Sequence record: MN563784.1
Length of the DNA stretch: 64,000 nt
Strand: one strand, 5' to 3'
In this document: positions 60,883 to 63,740 of the stretch, piece by piece
Numbering within the stretch: the stretch's first letter is position 1
How the letters are laid out: each line of letters opens with the position of its first letter
Made by a program: the position numbers and the translations under genes
The notes under the pieces: model-generated
What the model saw: the letters and a program-made list of their open reading frames with translations, nothing else
The model's database searches: none
Told to the model about the DNA's origin: nothing

Positions 60883-61416
60883 ATGCAGGATATCTTTCCG
60901 TATGACATGGCATCGAGGAATGCGCTAGTAAAACTTGCGCGGGATGATTTAAAAATAAACTTCAAACCAGAAACAGTTACATTTGAAGATATGTTTTTTA
61001 GTCCAACCACGATTGAGCCTGGACGTACATTTATTGAAATGATCGACATTACTACTGACATTAAGTACATGTTAACTTACCGTCGGTTAGATTTTGCTGA
61101 TCCACGAGCTATTGGTGAAGGATCTATCCTTAAGATAGTTGGTACTTTAACACCTAAAGCGATTGCTGAAGAAATTAACCGTTCACGAGGTTGGAAGCTT
61201 GGACCAGATGATATTTCATTCGATACAACACCAATCAATGCAACTACGGATATTGTTCCATACACGATAGTAGCTATGTCGAGTAGTTATGCTTACTATG
61301 GTGAATGTAATATACTAATTCAACGTATTGATGATACGTCAGATACTATCCGACTATTAGAGAATGGTGCAGCACGTTATCTAGAAAATGGTCAAATCCG
61401 TTATCTAGAAAGTTAA
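60883..61416 (+). CDS. Virion protein with YRRLDF module and C-terminal triple R(L/Y)LE(NG) repeat (gp143 position)
   Basis: Ends TIRLLENGAARYLENGQIRYLES. Confidence 0.7.
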   Translation: MQDIFPYDMASRNALVKLARDDLKINFKPETVTFEDMFFSPTTIEPGRTFIEMIDITTDIKYMLTYRRLDFADPRAIGEGSILKIVGTLTPKAIAEEINRSRGWKLGPDDISFDTTPINATTDIVPYTIVAMSSSYAYYGECNILIQRIDDTSDTIRLLENGAARYLENGQIRYLES

Positions 61417-61477
61417 GTAATACCCTCAATGAACCTAACCCAGGGTTCATACTGGGTTAATATGTAGAGGTTATATC

Positions 61478-62260
61478 ATGAAAGTATTACGCAAAGGCGA
61501 TAGGGGTGATGAGGTATGTCAACTCCAGACACTATTAAATCTATGTGGCTATGATGTTGGAAAGCCAGATGGTATTTTTGGAAATAATACCTTTAATCAG
61601 GTAGTTAAATTTCAAAAAGATAATTGTCTAGATAGTGATGGTATTGTAGGTAAGAATACTTGGGCTGAATTATTCAGTAAATATTCTCCACCTATTCCTT
61701 ATAAAACTATCCCTATGCCAACTGCAAATAAATCACGTGCAGCTGCAACTCCAGTTATGAATGCAGTAGAGAATGCTACTGGTGTTCGTAGCCAGTTGCT
61801 ATTAACATTTGCTTCTATTGAATCAGCATTCGATTACGAAATAAAAGCTAAGACTTCATCAGCTACTGGTTGGTTCCAATTCCTTACTGGAACATGGAAA
61901 ACAATGATTGAAAACTATGGCATGAAGTATGGCGTAATTACTGATCCAACAGGCGCATTACGTAAAGATCCACGTATAAGTGCTTTAATGGGTGCCGAAC
62001 TCATTAAAGAGAATATGAATATTCTTCGACCCGTCCTTAAACGTGAACCAACTGACACTGATCTTTATTTAGCTCACTTCTTTGGACCTGGTGCAGCGCG
62101 TCGTTTCTTGACCACTGGTCAGAATGAATTAGCTACTACCCATTTCCCAAAAGAAGCTCAGGCAAACCCATCTATTTTTTATAACAAAGATGGGTCACCT
62201 AAAACCATTCAAGAAGTTTATAACCTAATGGATGGTAAAGTTGCAGCACATAGAAAATAA
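61478..62260 (+). CDS. gp144: Modular endolysin: PG-binding domain plus lytic transglycosylase
   Basis: 260 aa recognised as KZ144 ([17 protein letters not shown]...FASIESAFD...ATGWFQFL...YLAHFFGPG). Confidence 0.95.
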
Positions 62261-62343
62261 GATGTAGCAATAGAATGGAGTCTATGGTATCATGTGAAAC
62301 TTCCCCTCATGATAAACCACATCTTGTGTCAATGTAACTTTTT

Positions 62344-62371
62344 GAGAGTCCTTCGGGACTCTCTTATGTTG
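62344..62371 (+). terminator. Intrinsic terminator
   Basis: GAGAGTCC-TTCG-GGACTCTC then TTATGTTG. Confidence 0.82.
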
Positions 62372-62465
62372 TTAAAATATTACTCATTAGCAATAGTACA
62401 TTACTGTATGAGTCTTCTTCGAAAGACTAACATGTTAGTGTTTCTTATACAGCAAGGAAATAAAA

Positions 62466-63740
62466 ATGGCAAATGCTACAGACAAAGGCAAGATCAGTCA
62501 ACTGCCGGATCTAGCTACTCTTAACGATAGCGAGTATATTGAATTAATTCATACCGATGCAGCTGGTCAAGTCGATAACTATAAGTTTCTGCTGTCAAAA
62601 CTACAGACTGGGGCACCCGGTCTTAGTGCGTACGAGATTGCCGTTAAAAATGGTTTCCAGGGAACTGAAACCGAATGGCTTGATTCGCTTAAAGGTAAAT
62701 CTTCTTATCAAATCGCAGTCGATCTAGGCTTCGTTGGTACTGAAGAAGAGTTTATAGCATCCCTTAAAGGTGATGCTGGTAAGAGTGCATATGAAGTAGC
62801 TGTGGAAAATGGTTTCCAAGGTACTGAACAGGAATGGTTAACATCACTGCATGCAACCATGACTGCTGAACTACTCCAGACACTCTTAAATCAACAAGGC
62901 TATACAGTTAAAGATGTACTGCGTGTAACTGGTAAGAATGGTGGATTATCATCCAACGCTGCTTTCCATAACTTTGCTTTCCTGTTTGATAAGCGCCTAA
63001 ATCAAGATGACTTAACCGCTGGTGATAAAGTACCACAGCGTATGATGGAACAAGGCCGTATGGAAGCAGAAGGTTATTCTTATCTAAAGAACGCCTCTGC
63101 ACCCACTACGCAAGGTGCATTACCCGAATTACCTGAGTCTGAAATTCGTATTTACGACAATGGTGAATTCCAGATTGGTAGTTTAACTGATTACATTGCA
63201 TTCAAGAATGACGGCAATATCCGTATTGTTGAAGGCGCTGATGAATCAACTGTTGATCTTAAGAACCTTCCTAAAAATGAAGGTATTAGTGGCGGTGTAT
63301 TCGTCAAAGATGTACAAGCAACTGACCCCAGTCAGAACGTAGGTAGTATTGTGCGTACCCCCGATGGGCACAGCGTACAGTCATGCCTATCAACTACTAG
63401 TAATGTTCGAGTTATCGTTGATGCAATAACTGGACATTCTAGTTATGTACCTAGTGTTAAAATCAATAACATAGATGCAGTTGTAACTCCTGGCGTTAAT
63501 CCACCTATGTGGATTGCTACTGCCGATATTGATCTTGGTGCACCCACTACTGAAGGTTATGCTGATATTGTTGTAGAACACGCCGATGGGGCTAAATTCA
63601 CTACTAAGGTATTAGCCGATACTCCCGCTAATATTACTAGTGCTGTATTTACTGGCGGGTATTCGGTTGGGCGAACCAAAAATAAAAAAAAAGAGCATGT
63701 TTGGAATAAAATAATTAATGTGGAAAAAAAAAAAATATAA
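62466..63740 (+). CDS. Fibre-like virion protein (gp145 position); C-terminus beyond about 63660 unreliable
   Basis: KISQLPDLATL N-terminal module; three SAYEIAVKNGFQGTETEWLDSLKG-type repeats; ends in homopolymer-rich degraded sequence. Confidence 0.7.
   Translation: MANATDKGKISQLPDLATLNDSEYIELIHTDAAGQVDNYKFLLSKLQTGAPGLSAYEIAVKNGFQGTETEWLDSLKGKSSYQIAVDLGFVGTEEEFIASLKGDAGKSAYEVAVENGFQGTEQEWLTSLHATMTAELLQTLLNQQGYTVKDVLRVTGKNGGLSSNAAFHNFAFLFDKRLNQDDLTAGDKVPQRMMEQGRMEAEGYSYLKNASAPTTQGALPELPESEIRIYDNGEFQIGSLTDYIAFKNDGNIRIVEGADESTVDLKNLPKNEGISGGVFVKDVQATDPSQNVGSIVRTPDGHSVQSCLSTTSNVRVIVDAITGHSSYVPSVKINNIDAVVTPGVNPPMWIATADIDLGAPTTEGYADIVVEHADGAKFTTKVLADTPANITSAVFTGGYSVGRTKNKKKEHVWNKIINVEKKKI

Follow-up and report, generated by a model that had tools for sequence, protein, structure and literature searches.

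Which partner does a short triple-repeat peptide at the C-terminus of gp143 serve in phiKZ-type phages, and why does the same peptide recur behind the stop codon of the major capsid gene? We addressed these questions in a stretch of 64,000 nucleotides (hereafter, the window) that covers the end of the record of a phiKZ-type Pseudomonas phage (vB_PA32_GUMS, MN563784), in which the gene for the gp143 orthologue is followed two genes later by gp145, the gene for a fibre-like virion protein with a K-I-S-Q-L-P start. The initial annotation of this locus had proposed that the repeat is a modular tag bound by the N-terminus of the fibre, and that a single fibre could be displayed both at gp143 and on capsid subunits extended by readthrough. 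Docking of K-I-S-headed fibres on the C-terminal tag is, in our assessment, the best explanation and a probable one, because tag and head are coupled in genomes, the tag is borne by suitable carriers, both are present or absent together in jumbo phages, and a tag arginine co-varies with a head glutamate.

A triple-repeat tag on gp143 and behind the capsid gene

The gp143 orthologue (positions 60883–61416, plus strand; 177 aa) consists of a DUF7941-type N-terminal globular domain (residues 1–150) and a C-terminal tag (61351–61413, plus strand). The tag is composed of three 8-residue units of the form R-x-L-E-x-G-x-x (RLLENG-AA, RYLENG-QI and RYLES, the last being shortened to R-Y-L-E-S) and ends one residue before the stop codon. 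The major capsid gene (33464–35707) terminates in TGA, and the next 26 in-frame codons (35708–35785) encode RYLENG, RYLEDG and RKLEE; this second tag reaches a TAA stop codon, which is followed by a terminator hairpin (TGA to TAA, 35705–35788, plus strand). The three R(L/Y)LE repeats of gp143 and their recurrence in the capsid extension, as claimed in the initial annotation, can thus be read directly at the two sites, and the motif occurs nowhere else in the six frames of the window. Both copies could be aligned with 43 other tags, among which R20, E23, R28, E31 and R36 were invariant, and the profile of this alignment picked up both copies in the nearest genome (E-values of 1e-13 and 4e-11). 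A capsid TGA followed by the tag was also found in three further jumbo-phage genomes despite different capsid C-termini, that is, the in-frame extension after the capsid stop codon is conserved as a peptide. We infer that extended capsid subunits would be produced by readthrough of this TGA.

The gp143 orthologues are 98.9–100% identical across phiKZ-type records (98.9% to phiKZ gp143 itself), match phrog_2935 (E = 3e-46) and carry the annotation of virion structural protein. The Pfam family DUF7941 (PF25613) matched residues 64–148 below its cut-off (18.7 versus 27 bits, E = 1.3e-3), and another member of the gp143 family, L040, scored 36 bits. When we searched the PDB by Foldseek with the AlphaFold2 model of gp143 (predicted local distance difference test, pLDDT, 82.5), the lone significant match was chain 0 of 9xqd (E = 1.2e-6, template modelling scores of 0.58/0.67), a 150-residue chain in a phiKZ outer-baseplate entry. 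A preprint on phage Goslar identifies this chain as the N-terminal domain (NTD) of gp127 and lists gp143 as a DUF7941 protein (bioRxiv 10.64898/2026.04.21.720040). The globular part of gp143, as modelled, has the fold of the DUF7941 NTD, like phiKZ gp127. Instead of the full-length DUF7941 layout with a linker plus a globular domain at the C-terminus, gp143 comprises the NTD and a 24-residue tag, and in this short build it resembles short members such as gp23 of Goslar.

Within the gp143 family, whose members share 24–49% identity, the invariant residues are R157, E160, G162, R165, E168, G170, R173 and E176 in the tag, and just R68 outside it. The tag is the most conserved part of the family. 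In the AlphaFold2 model the tail was predicted with moderate confidence and displayed β-bridges spaced by eight residues.

The K-I-S head of gp145

The open reading frame (ORF) from 62466 begins MANATDKGKISQLPDLATLNDSEYIE. Its first 45 codons (62466–62600, plus strand) encode a head that comprises an N-terminal segment with K9, I10 and S11 and a β-hairpin (residues 24–30 and 36–42) bearing E26. Three helical repeats of the type SAYEIAV..NGF.GTE.EWL.SLKG follow (62622–62852, plus strand; residues 53–129), which AlphaFold2 modelled as six helices and which match PHROG tail-fibre families; the K-I-S-Q-L-P start and the three repeats had both been pointed out previously and are present as described. 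We defined a head as K-I-[ST]-x-[LMF] in roughly the first 10 residues plus a hairpin with E-h-x-E-h-V (h, hydrophobic), and gp145 has both. Against a hidden Markov model (HMM) of heads it gave an E-value of 6e-15, the gp145 head itself being among the 19 seed sequences. Across 57 non-redundant heads, I10 and E26 (gp145 numbering) were invariant and K9 was conserved in at least 90%. The AlphaFold2 model of the gp145 N-terminus, with pLDDT values of 84–95 over residues 11–40, is a small module of an N-terminal segment and one hairpin that leads into the helical repeats. In other phages, K-I-S heads continue into SAYEIAV-type repeats or into collagen-like Gly-X-Y repeats. Because collagen-like or helical repeats of a trimer type come after the head, K-I-S fibres are presumably trimeric.

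In its genome, gp145 is the lone K-I-S-headed protein. The jumbo-phage contigs L086, L019 and L031 contain two or three different K-I-S-headed proteins (about 200 to 1450 residues) beside one tag-bearing gp143-like gene, suggesting that alternative fibres compete for a common set of docking sites. Within gp145 itself, a single tag-like unit (D-G-N-I-R-I-V-E-G; 63222–63245, about residue 253) was noticed, perhaps by chance. The gene after gp145, gp146, has a conserved N-terminus of its own: it reads M-A-S-A-F-E-D-Y-V-N-G-E-L-P-K-R-V-S-S in a phiKZ relative (L001, 10536–10775), and distant jumbo relatives share this type (M-P-T-P-F-E-V-F-V-N-D-E-L-P-R-R-V-S-S in L045). It may be a separate docking head.

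Searches for known relatives of either element gave little. Neither tag nor head was matched by Pfam or by any solved structure; the PDB gave nothing meaningful in sequence and profile searches, for which gp143, gp145 at full length and the alignments of head and tag served as queries, and Foldseek matched the model of the gp145 N-terminus to no PDB fold. The head retrieved unnamed clusters alone from the ESM Atlas, with scores below 0.9, and a tblastn search of 50,697 phage records with the 50-residue head, a very short query, gave no match at an E-value of 1e-3. A literature search for the motifs returned unrelated material alone. We found no natural fusion of head and tag in one protein.

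Tags and K-I-S heads are coupled in phage genomes

The initial annotation had stated that phage genes ending in xLLE(D/N)G repeats often sit next to genes starting with K-I-S-(Q/E)-L-P. We scanned viral and bacterial contigs for this coupling, and it held in both directions. A strict DNA pattern for three units yielded 52 viral loci, in 42 of which the tag was located 0–5 residues before a stop codon. For 39 of these C-terminal tags, at least 200 nucleotides (nt) of downstream sequence were available. By HMM, a K-I-S-headed gene (M..K-I-[ST]-x-L) started no more than 90 nt past the tag in 14 of the 39; the number of directly adjacent K-I-S genes rises to about 18 once L016, L024 and L027, whose heads are divergent, are counted along with the short-flanked L009 (175 nt downstream, and hence outside the 39). 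At five more tag loci the K-I-S gene was one gene away, with an endolysin between as in phiKZ. The main exception to adjacency was a family of 165-residue tail-tube-like proteins, and in L044, the sole locus of this family that reaches far enough, a K-I-S gene lies 7.5 kb downstream. Conversely, a hand-made DNA pattern for the head recovered 52 genuine N-terminal heads, and a tag ended just upstream of the K-I-S gene in 30 (strict) to 37 (lenient) of them, or about 70%. On bacterial genome contigs the tag was rare (12 loci, several of them spurious), with two independent adjacent pairs, L138 and L143. The two motifs are therefore strongly linked in genome neighbourhoods.

Where the tag gene and the K-I-S gene are tightly adjacent, their stop and start codons abut or overlap, and nothing in these genomes pointed to another genetic code by which a stop codon would be read as a residue and neighbouring genes fused. 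All 92 distinct C-terminal tags consisted of exactly three units, and none had four. Among 60 distinct tag DNAs, all synonymous codons (six for Arg, two for Glu and four for Gly) occurred at the invariant positions; therefore, selection acts on the tag peptide. We also considered the repeat as a Shine-Dalgarno or other RNA element for the next gene and rejected this idea, given the codon usage and the GAA AAT of phiKZ, which is not Shine-Dalgarno-like.

Several layouts departed from the usual one. In L025 (8543–9859) and in L142, a contig of Blastomonas natatoria, the order is reversed and the tag is N-terminal (M-T-R-R-L-L-E-D-G..); the L025 protein has 439 residues and comes after a K-I-T-headed gene. 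Two small phage contigs have the tag in a short frame that lacks an obvious start. In L024 (3033–3173), the frame comes after a TAG stop codon, in frame with the upstream gene and abutting a K-I-S fibre gene, and in L042 (4100–4204) the tag is found in a 34-codon frame that has no start codon and many in-frame stop codons upstream, where a frameshift is possible. The latter two are candidate recoding events outside jumbo phages.

The tag is carried by unrelated structural proteins

The proteins that bear the tag are mutually unrelated. They include a baseplate wedge protein of the Tail_P2_I family (P2 gpI; E = 1e-42), whose gene immediately precedes that of its fibre, a Dit-like distal tail protein, tail proteins of 640–680 residues and the tail-tube-like protein, as well as gp143-like DUF7941 proteins, mini-proteins of 44–80 residues and short frames that lie past a stop codon. 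Among these carriers, several are known fibre-mounting parts. The tag is also common where no DUF7941 protein is encoded; in such phages, P2 gpI, Dit-like and other carriers bear it beside K-I-S heads.

Co-variation of a tag arginine and a head glutamate

The third scan was directed at tags in which a hydrophobic residue replaces Arg and gave more than 120 loci and 92 C-terminal tag matches. The pattern of each scan fixed one partner and left the other free, and the free partner followed the fixed one. In 69 unique adjacent tag/head pairs, the E26 column was occupied by Glu in 26 of 27 heads next to Arg-tags (the remaining one being a gap), but in 0 of 42 heads next to Arg-less tags (32 Pro, 3 Ala, 1 Val, 1 Tyr and 5 gaps). 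K9 was kept in the heads of both tag classes, and the head subtypes ..VQ.G.. and ..VVD.S.. were each found in both. On the best head tree, built with the E26 column left out, eight switches were counted, all of which were concordant. Pairs that are not adjacent fit the co-variation too, namely phiKZ gp143 and the capsid extension, L044, L005, RAY and PCH45.

Beside these pairs, we observed many ORFs of 53–65 residues (L158, L161, L162, L167 and others) ending in an Arg-less tag, ..NLLTExGDNLVQEDGGLILLE. The head often found 3' of these small ORFs is M-A-V-x-L-S-P-V-G-G-x-A-A-Q-F-F..G-G-K-x-Y-T-Y-x-A-G-T-T-T-P, not K-I-S; it is possibly another kind of socket for that plug.

Presence and absence in jumbo phages

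In five phiKZ-like genomes, a tagged gp143-like gene neighbours one to three K-I-S-headed genes, and four of the five have a second tag behind the capsid TGA, with differing capsid C-termini. Two further phages have the Arg-less counterpart. RAY encodes a short DUF7941 protein whose Arg-less tag is immediately followed by a P-I-S-G-L-P head with Pro at the E26 column, and PCH45 encodes a DUF7941 protein with an Arg-less tag end beside a K-V-S-E-L-P head, which has Met at that column. The capsid TGA of PCH45 (L126, MN334766) is followed by a 48-codon in-frame extension that contains a Goslar-type DEVLDGFALP and an Arg-less tag-like end, ..TEQGNPIELE; this end resembles the tail of the DUF7941 protein adjoining the K-V-S-E-L-P-headed gene.

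Profile searches detected neither tag nor head in Goslar, SPN3US, EL and OBP. Because Goslar has ten DUF7941 genes and yet lacks both, tag and head are, on these comparisons, gained and lost together and independently of DUF7941. In Goslar (L116, MK327938) the capsid gene ends in TGA, followed by 28 in-frame codons and a terminator, and the encoded tail (..LDDNVADGFIAP..) copies the C-terminal tail of gp23 (L112; ..LADNVADGFVKP..), a short and abundant DUF7941 protein. A rule thus holds family-wide, namely that the capsid extension copies the tail of a short DUF7941 protein.

A putative docking mechanism and its alternatives

We propose that the three 8-residue units, R-x-h-E-x-G-x-x, would form a portable plug at the free C-terminus of virion proteins, for which the N-terminal K-I-S head of the fibre would be the socket. 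Each unit may be a short strand that is closed by a (D/N)-G turn and whose Arg would contact the Glu of a head (E26 in gp145). With its three units, one chain might engage all three heads of a fibre trimer, giving a ratio of one tag to one trimer. In phiKZ-type phages, the plug would be presented by gp143, a short DUF7941 protein of the baseplate-periphery type, and readthrough of the capsid TGA by ribosomes would supply its second copy; gp145 could then be hung both at gp143 sites and on extended capsid subunits. Where gp143 and gp145 sit in the virion is inferred, and for phiKZ we regard display of gp145 at both sites as a plausible but tentative proposal that is somewhat more likely to fail than to hold. 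A similarly guarded view applies to a general two-part code across phages, in which a peptide of exactly three units and 20–24 residues (Arg or hydrophobic type) could be appended to any virion protein and recruit trimeric fibres via a head of about 45 residues (Glu or Pro type), with phiKZ gp145 on head and tail periphery; this generalization is conceivable rather than probable.

Several observations weigh against these proposals. In a transposon sequencing (TnSeq) analysis of phiKZ, orf143 took five insertions and gp145 and gp146 took none (bioRxiv 10.1101/2025.11.23.690004); the phage thus tolerates loss of gp143 but not of gp145, which rules out gp143 as the sole or indispensable anchor of the essential gp145. 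A cytoplasmic role as holin-specific lysis regulator has been assigned to gp143 (PMC12894885), and the phiKZ virion atlas places neither gp143 nor gp145 (PMC13250141). The C-terminal arms of the capsid protein form a β-barrel at the hexon centre, and an extension would exit on the hexon axis. We saw no concerted evolution of the two tags per genome: identities were 11–14 of 20 within and between genomes alike, and two tags of one genome were no more similar than tags of different genomes. About 30% of the K-I-S genes have no upstream tag, and some Arg-less tags precede a different, non-K-I-S head. As for the co-variation, two of the eight switches fall on supported branches and the phylogeny-aware test alone was not significant; moreover, the usual distance between tag and head is below 100 nt, and linkage alone could keep their types matched. 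Of the initial annotation, the modular tag bound by the fibre N-terminus is accordingly the better-supported part, through the coupling, the carriers, the pattern in jumbo phages and the co-variation, whereas the two-site display in phiKZ faces the TnSeq and holin-regulator evidence.

The alternative that survives best takes the DUF7941 NTD rather than the K-I-S fibre as the partner: the gp143 tail and the capsid extension would dock the NTDs of gp143, gp126 or gp127 and thereby build or anchor head-to-tail DUF7941 filaments of the kind proposed for Goslar. The gp127-NTD fold of the gp143 globular domain agrees with such an arrangement, as does the position of the tag, which sits where the DUF7941 linker is docked by AlphaFold 3 on the NTD of the next protomer in Goslar (bioRxiv 10.64898/2026.04.21.720040). 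The copying of the gp23 tail behind the Goslar capsid TGA, and the same kind of motif in the PCH45 extension, would also be expected. However, the tag is frequent in phages that have no DUF7941 protein, always beside K-I-S heads; Goslar has neither element among its ten DUF7941 proteins; the linkers of Goslar and gp127 bear a different motif; and the identity of a K-I-S head residue varies in step with the tag Arg. For these four reasons we rank this alternative below docking on the fibre and consider it unlikely; in phiKZ-type genomes, furthermore, the gp143-like gene always adjoins K-I-S genes. The two can be joined in one scheme, in which, for each lineage separately, the short DUF7941 protein and the capsid extension would bear a plug that fits the N-terminal socket of the fibres of that lineage.

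Alternatively, the tag could be an assembly aid that transiently templates or nucleates trimerization and folding of the fibre N-terminus, or that couples expression of the adjacent genes, with no hold in the finished virion. We deem this improbable. Such an aid would suit the tight adjacency with overlapping or abutting codons, the exact number of three units for a presumably trimeric partner, the dispensability of gp143 in TnSeq (bioRxiv 10.1101/2025.11.23.690004) and the lack of a defined site for gp145 in the atlas (PMC13250141), but it fits poorly with carriers that are structural proteins at fibre-attachment places and with the distance of the gp143 and capsid-extension tags from the fibre gene, and the use of every synonymous codon argues against a role at the level of RNA or ribosome binding.

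That gp143 is solely a cytoplasmic holin-specific lysis regulator, whose tail serves lysis and resembles the capsid extension and adjoins the fibre gene incidentally in phiKZ, is very improbable: lysis comes about 15 min late when gene 143, which lies within the lysis cassette and is dispensable in TnSeq (bioRxiv 10.1101/2025.11.23.690004), is deleted, the holin is triggered earlier on co-expression and AlphaFold 3 docks the globular domain on the gp142 N-terminus (PMC12894885), but the orthologues are annotated as virion structural proteins, the L009 and L015 genes stand among tail/virion genes before a fibre gene with no lysis genes near, the invariant part is the tag and not the globular domain, and the same tag recurs behind the capsid gene. 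The lysis role and the docking role are not mutually exclusive.

If docking on the tag is correct, it would provide a rule, readable from sequence, for which virion protein bears which fibre, including in many uncultured phages. The rule would also cover phiKZ, whose essential gp145 has no assigned place in the virion structure, and docking would give the hidden readthrough product of the capsid gene a function, namely fibres on the head. The tag and head would constitute a natural pair of short peptide and domain in two orthogonal variants (Arg/Glu and hydrophobic/Pro), and a swap of the tag type should abolish binding, while a matching swap of the head should restore it.

Gene order and the end of the record

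Positions 60300–64000 match the end of vB_PA32_GUMS at 100% identity and 47 other phiKZ-type records at 95–99.7%, and the gene order is that of phiKZ: spanins, holin gp142 (60366–60800), gp143, endolysin gp144 and gp145. The gp144 gene (61478–62260, plus strand) encodes an endolysin, a lytic transglycosylase with PG_binding_1 (E = 3e-17) and SLT (E = 2e-5) domains. Although it stands between the tag gene and the fibre gene, gp144 is outside the docking pair, because it is absent in the relatives L009 and L015; in both, the gp143-like gene is directly 5' of the fibre gene, amid tail/virion genes and with no lysis genes near.

The gp145 gene is partial in this record (62466–63665, plus strand). 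It encodes the first approximately 400 of 789 residues, the length of full-length relatives, and phrog_15433 is matched over 1–413 of its 798-position profile, the first half. Homology to relatives ends near 63665. Positions 63666–63808 are poly-A and a duplicated adapter-like string (ACACTTCACGACGCTCTTCCCATCATCAT..), and 63809–64000 are DNA of phiKZ gene 270/271 in inverted orientation. The record end is chimeric for these reasons; gp145 is cut at about residue 400, and its apparent C-terminus and stop codon at 63740, which the initial annotation had taken as the end of the fibre ORF, are an assembly artefact.

Comparison with known docking and readthrough systems

The closest parallel is found among the DUF7941 proteins themselves: for Goslar gp22/gp23 and phiKZ gp126–gp127, a C-terminal or linker peptide has been proposed to plug the next protein's N-terminal domain (bioRxiv 10.64898/2026.04.21.720040). 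The system described here is alike in that gp143 has the fold of the DUF7941 NTD, and in that the capsid tail after the TGA copies the tail of a short DUF7941 protein in both lineages. It differs in the plug, which is ..NVADGF.xP in Goslar and three R-x-L-E-x-G units here, and in the proposed socket, a K-I-S fibre head of about 45 residues and not a DUF7941 NTD; moreover, the tag/head pair is found far outside the chimalliviruses.

In T7, gp17 is mounted on gp11/gp12, and in the branched tailspikes of K1-5, G7C and Klebsiella phages, a conserved N-terminal module on an exchangeable fibre or spike likewise docks on a conserved tail site, so that the distal parts can be exchanged. The two or three different fibres with the same head in several jumbo genomes recall this arrangement. 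In contrast to these anchors, the site proposed here is a linear repeat peptide of 20–24 residues for which unrelated proteins, possibly the capsid protein among them, can serve as carriers, and our family, PDB-profile and Foldseek searches found no relation of tag or head to them in sequence or fold.

The A1 protein of Qbeta is a minor capsid protein made by UGA readthrough, and 10B of T7 is a frameshift product. As with A1, a capsid gene with a leaky UGA and a conserved in-frame extension would yield a minority of extended subunits, although the extension here, known from sequence, is only 26 residues long and a copy of a tag that tail proteins bear. Finally, the adenovirus fibre on its penton base and other fibre attachments of mismatched symmetry illustrate how the N-termini of a trimeric fibre are held by a partner that is not trimeric. 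Here, such a mismatch of symmetry would instead be solved by three tandem units on one chain.

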